NCBI GenBank assembly: GCA_964199315.1
Contig: OZ116699.1
Span: forward strand, 15,004,001-15,068,000
Source: Orbicella franksi
Taxonomy: Eukaryota
Direction: 5' to 3'
Length of the DNA stretch: 64,000 nucleotides
In this document: positions 32,404 to 49,025 of the stretch, piece by piece
Position numbering within the stretch: position 1 is the first letter of the stretch
Layout: every line of letters starts with the position of its first letter
Made by a program: the position numbers and the translations under genes
Notes under the pieces: generated by a model
Told to the model about the DNA's origin: nothing
The model's database searches: none
Seen by the model: only the letters and a program-made list of their open reading frames with translations

Positions 32404-35400
32404 ATTACAGTTAGGTCACTCGAACTGTGTATAACTGGACATCTTTTTGTACATTTTTGTAGTGGCTAAAGAATGAGGGCTCCATATAAACAAGAGTAAT
32501 AAGCATCATTTGCTTTTAAAACAACAATAAACTTGCCCTTGCGTATTTACAACAATTTTCCACTCCCCGTCGCGCGGAAACGGAGAAGATAACACTGAGG
32601 GCGCTGGAATTGTGAACACCTGGACCTTTTTCTACATTTTTTCAGTGACTTAATATTGGAGGCTCTTCATGTTAACAAGATTATTAAGCATTTTTACAGT
32701 GTAAAACACTAATCTTGTACATTATACAAAGGGTCTTCATTTTATAGTCACTCAAAAAGCATATCAAAATTGTCGAGTGTTCTTACTGCAATCCTCACGC
32801 AGATCATTTAAAACGAAATTTTAGTTACAGTGGGGCCCAAGAATTGACAAGTGCTGCCTCTGCTGAACAGCTTAAACGAAAAATGAGACGAAATAAATTT
32901 CGTATATATCAGAATTTCCGCGAGGCCATCATGTACCTTTTAATTTTTTTAGCTTTGATAGTGATGATTTTGCTGTGATTGAATAAAGGTTATTTGTAAC
33001 AAAAATAAGTCCATCACACACGGGTTTTGAATTTGAAAACTTTGACTTGTTGCCCCTTAACAGATTGAAAATAGGAGATCAAAAGCCCCTATCCCTGAAA
33101 CATATTTGTTTTAGGTTCCCCACCCCTCCCTTGAAGAGAGAGTTTTAACTTAAAAAGTTAGAATGTTAGAGGATTATTTGACGTCATCTCAAATTTCGCA
33201 CCATTTTTGACGCGGCGCGCCAGCCTTGCTTTTCAGCTTGCCTGTTTTGTACTGTCGCTTCATTTTCTCATATATCAAAACGTGGCGGATTACTTTTCTC
33301 GTGGAAATAGTTTACTTGTTTTTGCATTCTTGCCGCCAAAAGGGAGACAAAACGTCCTTCAAGGCCCTTCAAGTTCACAGCGGAGATTGCATTGCAAACA
33401 ATTTAGGAGTTGGGTATTAGAAACTGGGCAAAAACGAGTGGTAAAAAAAACGTGTCACCGGTAGGTTTTCAATTTTCTGCTGCTATAAGACTTTTCGTCG
33501 TTCAAGAGCATGTTATTTACGCTCAGCAGTAAGCAGACATAGTTCACAGGTGTCTGGTACCATTCACTTCTCGTTCACCAGACGGCATTAACAAGTCGTG
33601 TTTTCAAACAGTGTTTTGGTGGTGTACAACTCGAAGAGACATATAGGCTTATCTTAATCTGTAGTTTGTAAAACCACGGGCTCGATGGACATTGATACAA
33701 AAAAATAGTCAAAAATATTAAATTTCCCAGTAAATTTGAGTCAATGGAGGCAAACTATGTTGCTATGTCTGTTGCGTTCATAATTCAAATGTTACCATCC
33801 TTTTCACAAAACTTTAATGCTTTACAAAGAGGCATTTGAAAGGTCATTGCCAAAAGGAAGAGCTCAAATGAACGGAATTCGATGGTGTGAAAGGCAAATA
33901 TTTAAAACTTCTAATTAAGATAAAGTTATATACATTTTTCTCATTTTTTTTCTCAAAACGTAGGAAAATGATAGAGAAAAAAAAACCAGAAGGGTCACCG
34001 AACGCCCAAGATCGCTAAATAGCAGTGGCTACCAACATTAAAGTTGTTTTACAGTTATTCTTCAGAGATTTTAAAGTGTTTTATTTCTTATTTCAGTTGC
34101 CATTCAGTTTCCAGAATCAGTCCAAACGTTTCATAAACATTCTATAACAAAGACAACGAAACTGCATGAAATATCTGTTGAAAAAACGTAAGAAGTATTT
34201 GTTACTAACAGGAAAAGGTGCAAAGTTCTGTAACTCTTTACGTAAAAAAATGTGCAGATTTAGTACGGACATTTCATTAACAGCGAGTCTGTGGTCTGAA
34301 ATGTTTCACATTTTCCCCGATAAGGTTAAAACTCGGAACTTTTCCATGATAACTGTTTCGAGAATTATTTTCGTTCAAGCAGCGTTTTTCACCTTCATGT
34401 GGATTTTAATGGGAGTTGTAGTTGACACAAATTTTACCAACGTACCGAACTTTTACAAATTTTTTACAATCGTTTTCCCAAAGTGGTTTGCGTGAGATTT
34501 CGGCATCAAATACTTTCCCGTAAAATTTCATTTCCGAGATATTGTCAATTTGTAAACTTTCAAAAATCCAGGCTTAAAATTTTACACATCACAATCGCAC
34601 AGTACACATAACTAGGCATTTTGGAAATCCGGTAGTCGTGTCTTCGATTCGATTGGTGGAACGATTATAGAAAATGTATCAGAAAAACTAAAACATGCAG
34701 GCGGCACACTCAGTTTGCGGTGTGTGACGAAGGTATAGGATTAAATTATTGTTGTAGAAGTACTAAAAAGCTTTAAAAGCGTGAATGGAATGTAAGTCAA
34801 TATAGTAATCACTAGCGAACGAGCAAATGTTCAAATATTGTACAGAACATCTTGTTTATTACTAACAAAATTAACAAAAGTAGAATTTGTAGAGAATCAT
34901 CACCATTTTAACGGTATTTTGTGCCGACTTTGTGAAACCAAGACAGTTGTTAATAATACTACGAGACTACAGTTAAAATCAGTTCAATATACCATATCCT
35001 TTTAAATGACCCCTGATTGGGTGAGTGTAACAAATTTCGCAAATATTAACACTGCATCGAGACCACCAATATATTTTTCGAATTTAATTTGCATTTTTAA
35101 TGATTATTGTACACGTTTTACCACTCAGATCCAGTTCAATTTATCCTTTACAACAAGTGAGTAAACAAAGCCAAGGTTGTCATATTGATCACAATCCTTG
35201 TTCGTGTCGTCTTGCTGAGGATTTCAGTTTGTACTCTCCATTTGCAGGTAAATGAAAATCAGTTATTCGAATGCTAATCGCTAATTTTCAAACAATTTTT
35301 AATCCCTGATAAAAGGTTTCCGTAAAGTTGAGTCAGAAAATGTAACAGACTAGAGCTATTACTTCCTCAGTGCATATCTACTGTGCTGAAAGGGTAGTTC

Positions 35401-38400: not shown

Positions 38401-41400
38401 GTTGAGGAAACACACACATCTGAATGATGTGTGTAGCGGAACAATTCCTTGCAAGATATCATAGATGTCTCCGGCAACAATCTCAGTCTCAAGCATATAA
38501 ACTGTTTCCATGATGAAATCGAAATCGCTGTTGAAAAGCGTTACTTTGAACATACCTCTAACATTCGATGCTAAGCCATTTAGTACAAAAATTAACGGCA
38601 GCTAAAAAATGTTTTTTATTGACGGGAACGGTGTGTCTTGACGCCACTGCCTTGAAGAACGTCACGCACAAGCAAGAGAGCACACAGCCATACTCATTCA
38701 CGGTGTTATAATTCCCGATATTGACCTTACTACTTTCCTAATTTGATAATTTTTTAAGTTCCAAGCCTCCGCACAAAATAACGTGATCATATATTTGCGA
38801 GCTCTCTCAGGTTATTCCTCGACCCCACCCCTACAGCAGCATTTGGCGCCGTAAGGATTTGTCATTTTGTTTAGCAGCTCCGTCACGATAATTGTGAGTA
38901 AAATAGTATTCTGGCAAACTGGCATCTGGTTAACCCAGAGCTGGGTTGAACAGAGAATTGAGATATTTACAGCATACGAGGATCCTCCAAGTTGCTCTTT
39001 AGCTCTAGTTACTTCCCATATATCTACAACGCCATACTGTGGACATTGTGTAGACGGACTAAACATATTTATTTAGCATTAACCGAGTTGTTACCGGAAG
39101 CTACAACCACAACACAGTGCTGCGTGTGGGAGGCGATTTACGAATGTTTTTAAATAGGTGAAGAGTGTTTTTTTTTTTATCATCAATAATTGAGTCTTGC
39201 TAAGTTGTAGGTAAATTTTGACTACAGTAAATATAATAGTAGTTTCTGAAACCTTTTATCACATTTTGTACTATTTTTCATCACATTTTGAAGTGACTCT
39301 CGTCCCATAAATATTTAAAGTTGCACTCCTGTGTATTAGCAGTTCCATGGAAGAAACGTTACGCAACCAGTAGCATATTTTATCAATAGCAAACGTGAAT
39401 AGCATGGTCGCTTAAGAAAATATCCTACAGTAGATCTCCGTGCCACCTGTCATCCATCAAGGGGTGTTTCCGCCTTACCGATCAACCCTTGGGGGATCCT
39501 CTTTATTCAGAACGGGCCATTCAGCGCGTCAGCTTACTATGAAAAGAATACCGATTGAACTTTGAAAGAGGGATTCACTATTGACAGAGTTGCAACTGCT
39601 AAATTGATTTTCCCCACCATATCTAGTCTATTTTACGTTATCTGGGGCGCCATACCACAACGTATGGTATCGATTTTCGGCATACTTTGCGAGCCGCCAA
39701 CTATGTAATGCCACAAACAAGTACACCTATAATTCAAAGGATCTCTTATTTTAACTCAAGCATCTCTAATTTTTATCCTCCTTTTCCTTTTGACTGGGAA
39801 CAGTACTACTTTTTAAAAATTGGTATAACAAGAAAACAAACGTGTGGATTTTGCCGCTAAAATATTAAAGTACTTCAAATAATCTTCTGGTGATTGATGT
39901 TATCTTCCTATATGCCGTCATTATCATTTTTTCCGCACCTTCTGTATTCTAAATTTTGAATGTAAATATTTTAGGTGTTATCAGGTGTCATAAACAGCTC
40001 CGATGAAGGCCACCATTTATGCTCAGTTCAAATACCTGCTAAATTTCCCATCACTAACTCATTGATTGAATTCTAACCCAAACTAATTATGGCACAGGAA
40101 TCTACTAGGAACTTTGGTGTTTTAAAAAGGTTGGGTAGGTAATTTGGGATGCATTCACGCACACAAACCTTGGCCAAGAACAAGTATTTGGTTGTTTTTG
40201 ACGGTCATATTGATAACACTACGAGCTAGTAACACAAATAAAAGTTCAAATAAGTTTCTTGAACCCTCGTTAGGGTCCCGTTAGAGTAACAAGATCTGTT
40301 ATCGCTGTATGGCTAGCATACCACACAATTAACGTTTAATTGATCAGATCAAAAGCAGGCTTGATCGGTCATTATGATTTAGTTTATGAATACGCTCGGG
40401 CTCGAACAGAGCAAGAGAGCGGGTGCCCGGATAGAAAACACTGCCCCACGGCTGCAGCCTCACAGTAGGGACCTTCACGGCGGTTGAAACCCAGAAGCCC
40501 CGAAAAGGTACGGTGTTTATGACGTGCAGTAAAAAACCATGGACACTGCAATTAGAGTTATGATCCTCTTGGTATAGAGGCTTGCAGCATGAGCAGTTTG
40601 AAATGTTCAGATGCAACAGTCAAAAAGCAATTTGTCGTGAATATGTTACACTACGATAAACGTTTCAGCGTTAACTTTACCGTTTCGTGCCAGCTGTTAG
40701 CAATTATTGGTGTTTCGACGTTTTGCCGCGCTTAGGCAGGCTTAGGGTATGCAAATTAGTGCATAATTATTAACAGACTTTTAAGGTTTCTCTCCCAGAA
40801 ATAAAAGACTCTTCATTGTCCACACTCCTCATTTGCCACTCTTCTTGTTTTCCATACTCCGCATTTTGCACTTGCCGTACTCCTCTTTCCTTTCTTTCGT
40901 ATAAGGCTGGTAAGAACAAACACATCATTTTAATTGGTTAGGACACTTGTGTACAATGTCACCGATAGATCTTGAATTGTTATTACAGACCAGAGTATGA
41001 TGATACTGGTTTCATAGCCTGCATAGCAGGCTTTCATTTCCAAAAGTACACAGAGGATACGAAACTGCAAGCGAGTGCGAAACTTTTAAGGAGCAGGGGA
41101 AGGGGATCGGGGCAAAAAAGTAATTTTCCTATTGGCCTCAAACTGCGATCTTGATTAAAGTTAAAGGCCTTATCCCAAAGAGCTGATTTTAGGTTAAAAA
41201 TGCGCTATTAAATACTCTCAATACTATCTGCAATATTTATTATTGACATGTGCAAGCAAATCAGTAAGGGACATTAATTAAGATGAAGGGAGAGAGAATA
41301 TACGGACAAAAATATACATGTAAACAAAGAAGACTTTTATTGACAACAGGAGTCCAGATTGACAATAATTTCTAGTGGGTGGCTGAAATTGTAGACAAAT

Positions 41401-41704
41401 TTCTATTACCTTGCTGAAAAGTTTCATTGAAAGCCTAGAGAGAGGTAAAATGCGAATAAAGTGAGCCTGTTTTGATCCACCTATCAGATAAAGCCACACA
41501 GACTCCTGGGAAATAAGCCGCGGGAGAATTATGCTAACAGCCAATAAAACCCTGTGTTGTAACATTATCCCCACAGCGAAAGCCGCGTCGCCAATACTTA
41601 ATTGATGTCACTCGTTGATTTTATAGACTTCAAGTGAGACGGGTATGCACAACAACGACACTGGAAGACTTTAAGTGGAATAAATCAAACGACAACACTG
41701 AAAC

Positions 41705-44700
41705 ATGGAGTTAGAAATATATCAAGTGGCAATTTTATTGACGACGCTGTTTAGCGGATCTGACACGAGGCCTGCCGCCTCAAGACAAACTTCAGTGATT
41801 CGACTGCAATCTACAGTAAGTATAGTGCTAGTTGTAAATATTGAAGTTTAACAGGGTCATGATTGCTGCCGCAGTACTATAACTGAATGACATGGGTCAT
41901 GATCGCCTGACATCACGTCAAAATAACGTTCATAAATTGCTCTGATTTAATCCGATTTAGGAAAATCAACGTAGCTTACAACTTCAAAACCTACAAGAAA
42001 ACACATCCAGACATGCACGCCCGCCAGTGGTGGAGAACACCATCCATAAATCATCGATCTTGAGACGAGCAGTTACACAAAAGCTAAAAAGATCTGGAAA
42101 TTTACGTTCAGAATTTTTCTTCTCCTCCAAAACTGGGCGCATTTTACCGAAAAGAAAGATAGCCACACAGAAGAAATTGCATTATCTGGCTAAATTCAAT
42201 CGGCGAAAAGCCACCGAAAATGTGGTTCGCAATGGAAAATTAAGACGCCGTCGTTATGTGCTGCAAGGTTCAGAGTGGCCTGTGGGGTCTTCAGGCAGAA
42301 TTACCTGGAATATCGTTCAGTGGAGCGCCAGCCTATCTAATAATGACGTTGAGAGCACTCTAACGAAAGCATTCAGGAAATGGGCAGAAGTTTCTCCACT
42401 TGTATTCCGAAAGCTTGATTCATCAGCCACTGCCGACATAACAGTAAAGTTTGTCACAGGTAAGGAAGGATCTTTTTGTTTGATAAGAATTTCCTTAGCC
42501 GAATAATTATGCAACCAAGTGCAGCGTTACTGACCTACGGTGTATTTGTGCCAAACGCGAACCTCATACCGCCCATCTTCTCCTAACCTTAAAACATCAG
42601 TTATTGGTATTTTTGCACACTCACTGAATCAGTCCTTATCATAGTGCACGTAGCACAAAGAAAGGCCAAACATGCAAAGCAGTCAAATGAATTGTCCTGG
42701 CATCTCAAACCTTATGCCTTTCTAACGTCTTTCAATAGCTTCAGTTGTTGGCTCAACAAGCTTCTTAATTATCGAAACACCTTTAAAACGACAAAAAACG
42801 GACGAATCCAATAACTTCAACTGAGTTTTTTTTCACTGAAACGTTGAGTTTTTTTAGTTAAAAGATAAAGTTTCTTTATACAAATCTATGACATCTATGT
42901 TTGTTGTGGTTTGCAGTTGCGACACGGTGTAAATGTCTCCGTTTCCGTTCCCGCCATGAAGGTATATCCCGGTTAGTGTTTTGAGACCCGATATTTCCGT
43001 TGTTATAATACGGTCGTTCCGGCAGAAAATCAAAACCATTTCTATATCTTCATTTCAATCATAACGTTTTCTCGAAGTTTGCAATATTTTTCTCGCTGTC
43101 TTTCCCACACCCGTTTTACGATATCACACTAAGAAGAAACTATCTTTGCCAACAGTTTTATTTCAGTTTTCTTTCACAGCCTGTAAACGCCCACTTTCTT
43201 AACTTTGTGCGATGAATGATGCAATAATCCGGGAATGAGGTTTTCCTGAATGCAAGGATTTCTCTTGCTGACCTGAAATATTTTGGAACGCAGGATACTT
43301 AACTAACAACTAAATCACTAATACCACAAAAATATTGTCTAACGCGTTGTAGGTCTTGCCAATCATTTCGGAGTGTTCTTAATATCCCCGCCCTCTGTCC
43401 AGTTACGCAACAATATTGCCCTGTGATGTCTCTGTATAACATTTTTATTTCTCGACGGGAAGTCTCAAAATACGGAAACCAGCACGAGAAGCCCTTTTCA
43501 AATACACATCAAGCCAAGTTGATGGTTGAGAAAGATTTCTAATTCTAGCTTTTATATCCGGTAGCTAATTCTTCAGTCTGTACCCGGAAATTTTCTTAAA
43601 CAGTTTGTCTAAATGCCTTGTTATTTTATCCAAATCCCTTCATCGATGTCATCAGCACAGCCATGAACTACTGCTTGGCACCAACGTGAGGGCAAAACAG
43701 GGCAAAACACCTTTTTTCGTGTCATCGAAACTATATCCCAGTATTTATTAGGTTTTCCGATATATTGTAAAGAAAAAAAAGCGCCAGCCTATGACGTGAA
43801 AACATTCATCCTCTTTCCTCGCCCAGTATAATCTATAACCTGGTAAAAACTTCTGGATTGTACGTTGATACTACCTAATCGCTTGCATTCTTTCACGATT
43901 TGCGGATTTCGTGAAAACCATGGGTAGCCTGCGTCAGCTAACGGGGTAGTGGGGGGATGGAGGGCAAGAAAACGCCACGAAACTGAGCGCTTGTTGCGAA
44001 AGCTACGCATTCCAGGCGTATTACTCTTGACTATGTTCAACTAAGGTGTAAGCTCTACATATTGCATAGGAGATAAATATTCTCAATTTTTGCTGGATAA
44101 GTAAAGCAACTAGATTTCTATATGATTGCTATCTGTGCTAATTTTCTTCATAATTGAACACAGTGTATTGATCGTTTCAGTCTTTTATTACAAAGGTATG
44201 TCAGAAAAGGTAACCATGCAAAGAACCCAGCAGTTCTCAAAAACCGAAGTTACGTTCTAATTTGCTTTGCTCACGCGAACGTATAAATTATTTTACCCTT
44301 AGATTCCCTTAATACAATTAAATCAGACAAGGACTATGGTAGGATGCAGCGCACGCGTAGTAAGTCAAAAAATTGCGATTGAATGCGGAATAGCTTTCTC
44401 GGAAATACGCCTATTTCTCGAGAACCCCACATTAGAATTTCACGAAATTTGGCACGAAAACACTTTAGGAAATAAGTAACTGGAGTATTGAAAAAAAAAA
44501 AGAGAACTTTAACAAAGTAAATTCTCGATATTCCGGTGAACCTTCAACAAGGGATAATTAAAGATCTCTCTGCTAAATTATTATTAAAATAGTGTTAACT
44601 TGTGAGCATCATTACAAGCTTGTTGCATGCACATTAATTATAACGAAAATCTAATGACCAGATTTTCTGCAAATTAACAAAACTGATTTGAAAAGCCTGT

Positions 44701-47700
44701 TTATATTTATGCATGTGCCATGGCAATGGCACATACGTCAGCTTAACTATAAAAAAACCGATGTTGTGTTGTTAACTTACTTGCTGTCATTTTTGGCGAC
44801 CAAAGGATCAGGAGTTTTAGAGAAAAAGGTGAATGAAACACTGGTATCAAAAACTATGTTCAGCCACTATAACATTTTCTGGAGCGATCGTAGAGAACAT
44901 ATGGGAATCAACCTCTAGCTAGCTTCTTCACGTCAAAACGCGTATCCAACTCAGTGCAACACTAATTAGCTTTCAATCTATTAATCAAGTTTATTTTCAT
45001 GTCGGTCAATACATGTTACATTAAATTGAGACAAATATGAATAAATGAGGACTAAAGAAACCTTTACAGGCCTTTACATCATCACATCGTCACATTTTCA
45101 AATATGTAGAGCAGGTGTCAAACTGCCTTCCCGCTTTATTTACTATATTTGGCTCGAACTCTTCCGCACCTTTTATCGTATAGTTATAGTCATAATAATA
45201 TAATTATGGTTTCGAAAACGCAAGGAAATTACTCACAGACACAGTTCCCATATCTTCCGGTTTTGGGTAGGTTTTATCAAAACTGGCAAATTGTTACGTA
45301 AAGTATTTTTTCTTCTCAAAGCTGGATGAGATTCAGGATAACCGGTTCCGATCTCACTTATGCACATGTGTTGTCAAAATCAACCTGGCCCAGCTCCACC
45401 GACTTTGTTGCTTAACAAGTCTGGTCGCTTCAGACGGAAGCAAGCCTCGCTCAGGAAGCAAGTATTTATATCAAACAATAGCTAGATATAATCATTTGCA
45501 CAAGTGTCGGAAGCAGTCTTAGTATGACGTTACTAACCGCTCTGTCTATAATAATCCCTGAGATTCTGTAATAAGGATATGAAAAGTGTTGAATAATGGC
45601 ATCTTGCCATTGACATCTTCATTCTTTCTCTCCAAATACCTTTCTGTTTAGCTCGCGTATATGTAATATGTAATATTCCGATTGATTCGAGTATGAAATC
45701 AAAACAAATCTAGCCTTATTTTTATCCAGGTCAGACTGCTTCTTACCTTATTTCGAACTACGATTTTAGAACCACGGGAAATGAGTGATACGTTATTGAT
45801 CTGAACTACACCGTTGCCATTTTTGAAGCTTGAAGAACACACTCAAACCTCAAAGAATGTTTTTAAGACCGTCATTAAGCGAACCCACATACACTCTTTT
45901 TCTTTGTATAAGAACATTTAATTTTGGAACTGAGTCTGAACGTTCTTATATTTTTTTTTGGGATTTGAGGCTGAAAACATTCTTAAGATGTCCTTAAATT
46001 TACGTGGTATAAAAATAATGAGGACAGGTCAGCACGGACTCCCCACATGATAGATGTGATGTGATTACATGTCTCTCATAATTTGGCTGTTACGAGCTTG
46101 TCTTGGAGAGATCTACCTCTTTTGTAGGCTATGATAGGTGGATTTCTGAGGATGGGCTGATTTTGTATTAATGCCCCTAAGTATTTGGGTTAATTTACAT
46201 TTTTTTTTTTTTTTGCTACCTTTGTCTTATGCTTGTCATTTAATATACAGATTAGCAAAATAAAAACGTTCTTAATCGACTCTCAACCTGAGGAATGTTC
46301 TTAATACGTTCTTAAAATTTTGGTTAATCTCAGCCTCAACGTTCTTATAAAATAGGTTCTTGTAAAAAGAAAGAGTGTATATTTACTGTCATCAGTGACT
46401 CAAATCTTTTTCTTTTTGTTAAACCACCCAGTTTGATATATGAAAAAAAGCTAGAGACCTTGAGATTGGACTGAGGACGAGTATGAAATCGAGCCGATTA
46501 GTACAACTTTCAGTCTTGTTTTGTTCTCACCCAGAGTGCTACTCCTCTCTGCCAATCAGGATCTACTGAAATTTCGGTCTAGCTGGTCGCCAATTCGACT
46601 GAAAATTGACTGTTGGCGACCAGAATTTCAATCACTGATGCTAGTCGCCAGCAGACGACTATCTTTTAGCATCTTTGCCAATGTTTTGGACCGGCGCTCA
46701 AGGAATTTATTTCGTCTTAAATCAACAAAATTCGTGCGGAGTAACCAGCAAGAAACTTATCTCTTGCCTGGTTGAAGTTTTGAACCTCCAAATATTCCCG
46801 CTTAATGACCTTCGCAATCTCGTACCTCGAGTCCTTAATGCGCAAGCTTGACGAAACGAGTGACTACCGAGAGATCTGTTACAGGCTCGATTTTGATTGG
46901 TTTTAAAAACAATGGAAATGAGCGGAAGTTAAACACCAGCGTCTCGATTGAGCCACAGCTTGGGCCTGCGTAATTTAACCGAACGACCGACATTTTCGGA
47001 CTTCCAATCGCATCTTGTCGCTCGTTTTCCAACTGCTGGTAAACATTGGAACGAGCTTGTGAGCTCCACAGTTCAACAGTTGTAATCAACGCATGTAGGC
47101 ATAAAAAAATTAATTTCGGACACCGGTGTTAAGGACACCCTAGACTCTACACTAAGCTTAAGGAGTCAATCAATCCTGTCGAAGAAGAACGAATGTTTTC
47201 TTCTGATTCAGTGTGTATTTAGACACTCCCAATTTGCAAATTGCGGATACTTGTGTCTATCAGCGTGATTTCGAGTAGGGTTTATTGTCTTCCTGCTAGC
47301 TGTCACAAAGTAATAAATGTCAATAAAGCATTAAATTTTGATAAAGAAATGAAAACATTTTTTATTGAGCCAAAAAAAGTTTCCTGGTTCCTTCAACAGG
47401 TGATTAAACATCTATTCAACCTTAGATTAAAATTGGCTCGTTCGTGTTTTCAATGGTGGTGAAGCCAATGGCCGTACCAACGACACTTGTTTGTCATATG
47501 AGCGGATTCGTTATATTCCAGTTTATTATTCCCGTGCTGCACTATGTTAATTTCCGCATAAGTGGGTCAACAACCAAACTTTTGGAAGACTCGGGAATTA
47601 CATCATTTTTAGTTGAGACAAACAAAGTCCGGCATAGATATGACCTTCCAAGAAGCGAAACGAGTTGCTTTAGTTTAAAAATATATCTCAAATCTTTCCT

Positions 47701-49025
47701 TAATTTATGCTGTTAGGATACCACGGAGACATGAAGGCTTTTGACGGCCCGGGCGGTGTTCTAGCTCACGCTTTCTACCCCGGTAGTGGAGGAGATATTC
47801 ACTTTGATGATGACGAGACGTGGACTGTCGACTCTTTACTTCCGATTGCAGTACATGAGATAGGCCACAGCCTAGGACTGAATCATTCCGATGTGCCTGG
47901 TTCCATCATGACTTCATCTACAAGTAACTTAAACAGCAATGCCGTACTTTCTAGGGACGACGTCGACGGTATACGTGCGATATATGGTATGTAACACTCC
48001 AGTTCTCGAACTTCTTTATGTATGTATGCATGTTCTTGAACTCGCGTCACTTCCGATTGGAGAAATGTTGGTCTTTTTTTTTTTTTGGCGAGGTGCTGAA
48101 GCAAATTTGTAAGCCACGAGAAAAAGAGAGATTAATATATAATGTACCTTTGGTTGATCGTAAACAATTGTCTGAATCATGCTGAAATCCACATTGATAG
48201 AGTGAGACGCTCATGGGCCATAATTGGACACGCCTAACACGAAATATCAATTCCGGTTCGGGCTCGTTTCACCATCAAAAACCTTGCTTGAAACGATGTT
48301 TTATGGCAAAGCGTTATTTGATTCAAAAGTGCTGCGCTGCATATGGCATATTTTGCATACATACATATTTTGTCAGGTCTAAGAAGGTGTTCCATTCTTT
48401 CTTTGAAGGTTATTGCAACCCTAGTGTGACTGCCATTGAATCCTGGATGGGTGATGGTAAAAGTTACATTTTTAAAGGGGATCGTTTCTGGCGCCTCAAC
48501 GACGCCGACGCAGAGACCGATCGTGGTTACCCCAAAACGATATCTTCGAAGTGGATAAACGTGCCAGATGACATCGATGAAGTTTTTCTTTGGAGTCACA
48601 ACTGGAATACCTATTTTTTCAAAGGGCATGTGTACTATAAATTTAACGATCTACTAGGTCGGGTGGACAATCGGAATTATCCCAAAAGGATCTCCGAGGG
48701 ATGGCCTGGACTGCCGACAGATGGAATTGATGCCGGGTTCAGTTATAGCAATACACAAAGCTACTTTTTTAAAGGCGATAAAGTGTACTTATACGATAAC
48801 GTCTTGGACCGAGTCGATCCTAATTACCCCAGCGACGGCAAACTAATTAGTGACGTATGGCGCGGTCTCCCTAACAACATCGATAGTGCTTTCCGGTGGT
48901 ATTGGGATGGTATCAGCTACTTCTTCAAAGATGATAGTTATTATTGGTGGGATGTTTCTAACCAGAGTGCACGTGGTCCTTTTCTAATCGGGGATACGGC
49001 ATGGAAGAACATATGTGACGTTTAG
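41705..49025 (+). CDS. Secreted matrix metalloproteinase (M10A catalytic domain plus hemopexin domain), atypical prodomain, 498 aa
   Basis: Exons: 41705-41815 (signal peptide [21 protein letters not shown]), 41961-42459 (propeptide, RRRR|[21 protein letters not shown]), 47717-47986 ([43 protein letters not shown] Met-turn), 48409-49025 (hemopexin repeats [20 protein letters not shown], with Cys at both ends). Phases 0/1/1 are consistent. Confidence 0.93.
45891..46378. mobile_element. MITE in MMP intron 2
   Basis: atacactctttttctttgtataagaac is inverted to gttcttgtaaaaagaaagagtgtat. Internal gttcttaa repeats. Confidence 0.65.

Follow-up and report, generated by a model that had tools for sequence, protein, structure and literature searches.

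The 64,000-nucleotide stretch of Orbicella franksi DNA analysed here (contig OZ116699.1, positions 15,004,001 to 15,068,000; hereafter the window, with coordinates counted from its first letter) carries on its plus strand a matrix metalloproteinase (MMP) gene whose four coding exons specify a product of 498 amino acids (Table 1). Latency by means of a cysteine switch is textbook knowledge for MMPs, and the exceptions are few and poorly understood. In the product of this coral gene an intact catalytic domain is preceded by a cysteine-free, basic propeptide that ends in RRRR.

A matrixin without a cysteine switch

Residues 1-135, of which 37 are encoded by the start-codon exon and 98 by the exon that follows, contain no cysteine, and the part of the propeptide that comes from the second coding exon (residues 38-135) has 27 lysines or arginines, five acidic residues and three histidines. 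These values, obtained on a recount of the translation, agree with what a sequence-only reading of the locus had claimed for the 135 residues, their composition and their coordinates. The reading frame runs uninterrupted from the propeptide through RRRR into YVLQGSEW, with the four arginines at residues 132-135 immediately before Tyr-136, and this segment matches the RX[K/R]R motif of a putative furin site. A six-frame search of the window, which has no runs of N, turned up neither PRCG nor CGxPD, and the earlier claim that no PRCGxPD exon is hidden upstream of the furin-type site is upheld by this search and by the stop codons upstream of the start (see below).

In every matrixin feature that we tested, apart from the cysteine switch and the three-helix prodomain, the coral protein conforms to the family. 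The catalytic zinc motif HExxHxxGxxH is present as [11 protein letters not shown] at residues 250-260 and is followed by a Met-turn, SIM, at 264-266, while the His/Asp/His/His set of the S-loop that binds the structural zinc is found in full at the aligned positions HGD206, AHA220 and HFD232, in keeping with the sequence-only description of an intact catalytic center. The scores of the two catalytic exons against PF00413 (Peptidase_M10) compare with a cut-off of 24 bits, and PF00045 (Hemopexin) matches the last exon in three stretches and well above its cut-off. The Pfam matches, the cysteine positions and the structural comparisons agree on a four-blade hemopexin domain with a cysteine pair joining the first blade to the last; Cys-296 and Cys-496, at the two ends of this domain, are the sole cysteines of the 498 residues, and MMP hemopexin domains carry a disulfide at these two end positions.

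The AlphaFold2 model of the pro-form has a predicted local distance difference test (pLDDT) score mostly of 80-98 in 10-residue block means over the catalytic and hemopexin domains. The catalytic fold, with a pLDDT of ∼90, lies within a root mean square deviation of ∼2 Å of MMP-1, MMP-8, MMP-12 and MMP-13, and the hemopexin domain, with blocks mostly at 85-98 and the last at 75, shows paired β-strands repeating throughout. Foldseek returned full-length matches to MMP-1 and MMP-13, matches to the hemopexin domains of MMP-14 and MMP-2 at template modelling scores of 0.79-0.83, and 41-46% identity between the catalytic domain and those of human MMP-1, MMP-3, MMP-7, MMP-8, MMP-12 and MMP-13. At the N terminus a hydrophobic stretch of only ∼12 residues ([12 protein letters not shown]), modelled by AlphaFold2 as a helix at 5-14, looks in its sequence like a putative cleavable signal peptide.

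The catalytic domain passes into the first hemopexin cysteine with nearly no hinge (IYG-Y-C; 47984-47986 and 48409-48416), a build common to the whole cnidarian clade described below, its scyphozoan and anemone members included. Close to the active site, Orbicella has TSSTSNL after the Met-turn (47890-47935), where MMPs usually carry the P-x-Y of the S1' wall, and its loop ahead of the active-site helix is ∼5 residues shorter than in the coral orthologue L001 and the outgroups. These loop changes may alter substrate specificity.

The gene is expressed, contrary to one of the ways in which the sequence-only reading had been thought vulnerable. Fourteen RNA runs contain the MMP stretch, and the runs containing it span 12 studies in all. 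With RNA reads mapped over 39000-44999, splicing of the first two coding exons is seen directly, the joint 41815>41961 being supported by 16 raw polyA reads and two contigs, and nine reads leave at 42460 and carry on with the first bases of the third coding exon; run X21, which bears the same species label, contributed no reads. A Logan transcript open reading frame (ORF) of 498 residues, P0069, and the RefSeq protein XP_020623825.1 (P0184), an Orbicella faveolata "matrix metalloproteinase-16-like" protein with 97% identity to the O. franksi enzyme, both agree with the gene model; against it they are identical at 135/135 pre-pro residues and differ at 14 elsewhere. Independent transcript ORFs of 498-502 residues from several runs begin at the same Met. 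One difference from the window concerns positions 42272-42273, where all RNA reads and contigs have C and A in place of A and G, giving Lys-142 instead of Glu-142 and hence the GSKW found in other MMPs; the two versions reflect different alleles or sibling species.

The sequence-only reading needs one correction: the exon that carries the ATG is not the first exon of the gene, as two alternative first exons lie upstream of it (Table 1, exons A and B). Exon A rests on a contig of run X3 that covers 41625-41816 and has 79 extra bases at its 5' end, the last 30 of which are an exact match at 35216-35245 that shuffled sequences did not produce. Exon B rests on the joint 40505>41625 (GT..AG after a shift of 2 in the cut position) in six raw polyA reads of run X23, in a region where read depth is confined to 40200-40599. 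Both splice to 41627, from ∼6.4 kb and 1.1 kb upstream, and they came from different runs or species labels; their presence suggests that the gene has two promoters. Between 41627 and the start codon at 41705 the frame is closed by three stops, and hence the upstream exons do not code for protein and cannot be the source of a concealed switch: of the earlier proviso that an alternative upstream exon might carry PRCG, only the exons themselves were found. The 5' untranslated region (UTR) also contains an upstream ORF of nine codons at 41645-41674 (ATG at 41645, TAA at 41672), which shares the frame of the main ATG and is terminated by stops. Within intron 2, the segments 44344-44385, 44461-44497 and 44814-44867 have very high summed RNA contig depth (thousands in run X1) with loose ends on both sides; an Rfam scan of this high-depth part gave nothing meaningful, and the segments are probably pieces of repeats or abundant transcripts from elsewhere.

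Table 1. The MMP gene of Orbicella franksi: positions of its parts in the window
Feature	Position	Strand	Details
Coding sequence	41705-41815, 41961-42459, 47717-47986, 48409-49025	+	498 residues
Alternative non-coding first exon A	35169..35247	+	5' end approximate; donor CAG/GTAAAT at 35247/35248
Alternative non-coding first exon B	40390..40507	+	5' end approximate; donor AAG/GTACGG
Start-codon exon	41627..41815	+	5' UTR 41627-41704; coding part 41705-41815, 37 residues, putative signal peptide and start of propeptide
Intron 1	41816..41960	+	145 nt, GT..AG, phase 0; 16 raw reads and 2 contigs
Exon-2 propeptide part	41961..42254	+	98 residues, 0 Cys, net charge ∼+22; RRRR furin-type site at 42243-42254
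Catalytic domain, N-terminal part	42255..42459	+	Putative mature N terminus Tyr-136; exon end phase 1; PF00413 39 bits
Second catalytic exon	47717..47986	+	Structural-zinc ligands, [11 protein letters not shown] (47854-47886), Met-turn; PF00413 109.9 bits
Hemopexin exon and stop codon	48409..49025	+	Cys-296...Cys-496; PF00045 109.9 bits; splice choice tested

Coral orthologues and their switch-bearing relatives

Orthologues were sought by an exhaustive profile-free search with exon 2, by word-indexed searches and by contig look-ups, and the resulting coral set comprises the Orbicella sequence and six others: the Logan mRNAs P0068 and P0070 (∼78-79% identity), P0066 from Oculina patagonica (67% identity), and L001, L002 and L003, coral contigs of ENA metagenome assemblies with 45-52% identity in exon 2. 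P0003, a 99-residue fragment without the RRRR segment and with a divergent C-terminal end, was excluded. L001, L002 and L003 have the same exon layout, namely a conserved signal-peptide exon, then one that encodes the propeptide together with the beginning of the catalytic domain, and then another catalytic exon; the hemopexin exon is also present in L001 and L002 and was not found within the fetched stretch of L003. The switch motif is present in 0/7 of these orthologues. All seven propeptides are basic, with 24-29 lysines or arginines and 3-10 acidic residues, and end in an R-x-R-R before Tyr that is invariant in 7/7. The only cysteine is a non-conserved one in L002, at a site that is His or Arg in its nearest orthologues, L001 and L003.

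Conservation is uneven along the pre-pro region, with 21/37 positions invariant among the seven orthologues in exon 1, 8/94 in the propeptide and 25/69 in the first catalytic part. The best conserved part of the propeptide is a block of the form R-x-(E/D)-F-F-x-F-x-x-K, and no C, H, D or E of the propeptide is invariant. The signal-peptide exon (41705-41815) is the most conserved pre-pro part, strikingly so for a signal peptide, and its hydrophobic core is identical in Oculina. Intron 1 measures 145 nt in Orbicella and ∼9.6 kb in Oculina patagonica (L008, 10112-19698), where a reverse-transcriptase ORF lies ∼7 kb upstream of the gene.

In maximum-likelihood trees built on the catalytic and hemopexin region, the seven coral sequences form one clade (95-98% support) nested in a larger clade with 100/100 support and a long stem, whose other members are Nematostella, Actinostola, the scyphozoans Rhopilema and Sanderia, and the relative P0071; this larger clade is a cnidarian-specific MMP group. 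The members represented by the Rhopilema esculentum XP_065071686.1 cluster (P0067), Sanderia P0072 and a partial Nematostella vectensis sequence (P0028, L005) share the hingeless architecture of the coral enzyme, have the prodomain end and the catalytic start in the same exon, and are 49-51% identical to P0069 over the aligned 69-74%. They differ from it in keeping PRCGVED or PRCGVTE. The scyphozoan members have a canonical prodomain, with helices that are predicted confidently and a propeptide that is not polybasic, and it ends in PRCGVED followed by RRRR. The Nematostella RefSeq protein is partial, and the exon that precedes it encodes PRCGVTE, then ∼30 mostly basic residues and RRVRR, and the fragments P0008 and P0009 are in the same intermediate state.

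The Orbicella franksi genome has no second member of this MMP clade, which makes the coral gene an orthologue of the switch-bearing genes rather than a side copy or paralogue. Orthologues with an ordinary cysteine switch had been named beforehand as a finding that would mark the Orbicella sequence as a degenerate copy; they exist, in the anemone and the jellyfish, but the coral orthologues lack the switch throughout. As the switch is kept in those relatives and absent in the coral orthologues, its loss is a lineage-level event and the Orbicella gene is not a degenerate allele.

In the MAFFT alignment the coral segment LPTFEITQKT (L001) falls under PRCGVKDKT, a placement that would fit decay of the prodomain in place and, with a profile-profile comparison that is not significant, is suggestive only. 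The long-branch sequences P0243 and P0240 have a coral-type signal-peptide exon and likewise lack PRCG, and a related ENA fragment, P0020, has PRYG (PRYGVKD) in an otherwise canonical prodomain; from these we conclude that the cysteine was lost more than once in the group. The cnidarian UniParc sequences P0065 and P0024 have a furin-type site and no PRCG, and P0065 shares a motif with Hydra P0037. Elsewhere in the same genome (G000), large tandem clusters of other MMP-like exons lie at C4:3.53-3.67 Mb, C3:29.05-29.31 Mb, C13:1.61-1.98 Mb and C14:13.40-13.41 Mb, the last with three equal-scoring copies at a spacing of 5,966 bases and one TAG inside each match.

The propeptide and control of the enzyme

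We looked for a three-helix prodomain in the coral propeptide with Pfam, hhalign and AlphaFold2, and none of them revealed one. PG_binding_1 (PF01471) has no match in the coral propeptides at E values up to 10, and the scyphozoan prodomains match it weakly (E 0.002-0.013); at the same limit the coral propeptides gave only chance-level matches in Pfam as a whole (PerC, Rpb4). Aligned with hhalign against a profile of canonical prodomains, the coral propeptide profile reached a probability of 0.2, with a single aligned piece of 11 residues, which is colinear. AlphaFold2 assigned a pLDDT below 50 to nearly all of residues 14-132 of the coral pro-form, whereas in P0071, a relative with a canonical prodomain, the helices of that prodomain reached 91-94 in the same pipeline, a contrast that is indicative only, the alignment depth being different for the two. 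Alignment of the prodomains and prediction of the pro-form, both proposed in the sequence-only reading, thus reveal no likeness to a canonical prodomain.

These results, taken with the orthologous series, lead us to favor a reading that, as a prediction from sequence, we consider probable: the prodomain degenerated in place, control passed to furin cleavage alone, and the enzyme is secreted active. The gene would be the orthologue, in stony corals, of a hingeless MMP that is specific to cnidarians and activated by furin, and its history would run from a foldable three-helix prodomain with PRCGVED, as in scyphozoans, through a state with only PRCGVTE, a basic linker and a furin site, as in the anemone, to the corals, in which no cysteine is left and what remains is a putatively disordered polybasic propeptide of ∼115 residues ending in RRRR. 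The furin site may have made the Cys-zinc latch dispensable, with latency needed only in transit. The signal peptide would direct the protein into the endoplasmic reticulum, a furin-type convertase would cleave after RRRR in the late secretory pathway to give a mature enzyme beginning at Tyr-136, and the enzyme would leave the cell already active. Control would then be exerted through transcription (from the two alternative promoters or first exons), through access to furin and through TIMP-type inhibitors, with no Cys-zinc latch and, we predict, no other latency mechanism. Among the ways of achieving latency proposed in the sequence-only reading, control by furin alone fits best. A histidine of KKLHYL as an alternative zinc ligand was rejected, as the seven orthologues have H, H, Q, D, D, D and G at this position. 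For electrostatic masking the support is circumstantial and comes from charge complementarity.

Several observations weigh against a prodomain that has simply degenerated. The low confidence of AlphaFold2 in the propeptide may in part reflect a shallow alignment. The length and net charge of the propeptide are kept in all orthologues, and its acidic-FF element (EFF or DFF) is kept in 6/7, with Q at the acidic position in the remaining one. The ratio of nonsynonymous to synonymous substitution rates (dN/dS) of the propeptide is 0.36-0.65, with 95% bootstrap intervals whose upper ends do not exceed 1.1 and with 0-4.5% of replicates giving a value of 1 or more; the propeptide is hence under weak purifying selection and not neutral. 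Moreover, the mature enzyme has a net charge of -14 to -20 in the corals and -8 to 0 in the scyphozoans, which fits masking by charge. Together these points suggest that the propeptide keeps some role that pure degeneration leaves unexplained.

What that role might be is the subject of two further readings, in which the propeptide is a new functional module that either masks or chaperones an acidified MMP by charge or, set free by furin as a cationic peptide, has a separate role outside the cell; taken as one, we regard such a module as unlikely. In the first of these, latency or chaperoning independent of cysteine, the polybasic propeptide would wrap the catalytic and hemopexin domains, which are acidic, and its acidic-FF element might lie near the active site; the zymogen would thereby stay inactive or soluble until furin removes the propeptide. 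The charges are indeed complementary in all six coral sequences for which they were computed, with propeptides at +21 to +27 (in Orbicella ∼+25, against ∼-16 for the mature enzyme), and the scyphozoan orthologues with canonical prodomains, with propeptides at 0 to +5, lack such a contrast; the dN/dS below 1 and the conserved R-x-(E/D)-F-F-x-F-x-x-K block point the same way. However, the propeptide offers no invariant metal-ligand residue, the acidic position being Q in one orthologue, just 8/94 of its positions are invariant, and AlphaFold2 gives neither a confident structure nor a confident docking; a predicted complex of propeptide 38-135, catalytic domain 136-294 and zinc had a score of 0.00 and a partner pLDDT of 37, which bears neither way. 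Many MMP catalytic domains are, besides, acidic anyway. We accordingly hold masking by charge to be a doubtful, minority reading. As a product in its own right, the propeptide would be a secreted cationic peptide of ∼110 residues, antimicrobial or binding matrix, skeleton or glycosaminoglycans once cleaved by furin. Its conserved length and basic composition, the weak purifying selection and two low-confidence AlphaFold2 helices (residues 67-82 and 102-121) can be cited for this, but the sequence itself is poorly conserved, internal dibasic sites are not conserved among the orthologues, and there is no likeness to known peptide families, Pfam giving nothing and an ESM Atlas feature search giving a best score of 0.84, inside the range of shuffled sequences. 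We judge this quite improbable.

Were the gene losing its function, the lost switch would be one symptom of a decaying MMP copy with an inactive or irrelevant product, and a whole-gene dN/dS of 0.5-0.9 among close species, the post-Met-turn loop without P-x-Y and the deletion in the loop before the active-site helix could all be read in this way. At deeper comparisons, however, the dN/dS of the catalytic and hemopexin domains is 0.15-0.4 (0.24-0.33 for the catalytic and 0.16-0.41 for the hemopexin domain in four such comparisons), at least seven taxa keep an uninterrupted ORF over the same four exons, no zinc ligand is missing, and RNA from 14 runs contains the sequence, so that decay of the gene is very unlikely. 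An artefact of the gene model, in which translation would truly begin at some upstream or alternative exon that escaped notice and bears PRCG, might draw on the existence of the two upstream exons, but both of these join at 41627, ahead of the three stops, and the window has no PRCG in any frame, the independent transcript ORFs share one start Met and the other corals share the exon structure; we consider such an artefact extremely improbable. Between the readings that remain, it is degeneration of the prodomain in place, with control by furin cleavage alone, that we regard as probable.

Relation to other metalloproteinases and meaning for the family

Among MMPs with a conventional latch, the coral enzyme is most usefully set beside human MMP-11 and MMP-28, secreted, furin-activated members of MEROPS family M10A, which likewise have a signal peptide (putative in the coral protein), RX[K/R]R before a mature N terminus of Tyr or Phe, an M10A catalytic domain in which no zinc ligand is missing and, at the C terminus, a hemopexin domain of four blades with a cysteine at either end. 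In contrast to the coral enzyme, which has neither and is nearly hingeless, both keep PRCGxPD and the three-helix prodomain. Switchless MMPs are already known, and the coral loss is a further case. The vertebrate MMP-23 (CA-MMP) has a propeptide without the cysteine-switch motif, an N-terminal signal anchor, and a Cys-array/ShKT and Ig-like C terminus instead of hemopexin (PMC7290392). The coral MMP resembles it in the switchless propeptide but has a short stretch resembling a signal peptide and a hemopexin C terminus, and belongs to a cnidarian-specific clade. MMP-23 also has an RRRR/Y-type convertase site before its catalytic domain. We considered the coral gene as an orthologue of MMP-23 and rejected this on its C-terminal domains and its clade; with the C terminus and the clade different, and the anchor probably so, the coral loss of the switch is independent of that in MMP-23 and the resemblance convergent. 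Some echinoderm MMPs lack the switch or the whole propeptide, and most MMPs of echinoderms carry the furin motif, according to a review (PMC8467561). Those cases, in another phylum, are sequence annotations only, whereas the coral loss is traced along an orthologous series with transcripts and several genomes. Our search of the searchable literature, including one by RefSeq accession, found no report of the coral gene or of a switchless cnidarian MMP.

The cnidarian enzymes thus line up, within a single group of orthologues, as a natural series of steps: a canonical prodomain in jellyfish, a degenerate one that retains its cysteine in the anemone, and one that lacks the cysteine in stony corals. 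With this series one could ask whether an MMP that has a furin site can do without the switch, and for what purpose it still requires a prodomain. A coral MMP that is, on the sequence, probably secreted already active would be relevant to tissue remodelling, to wound and disease responses and possibly to the calcifying matrix. If the propeptide were instead a new module, it would represent a latency or by-product mechanism undescribed so far in the matrixin family, and if the polybasic segment inhibits or chaperones the enzyme, it would constitute a new latency principle for this family of proteases.

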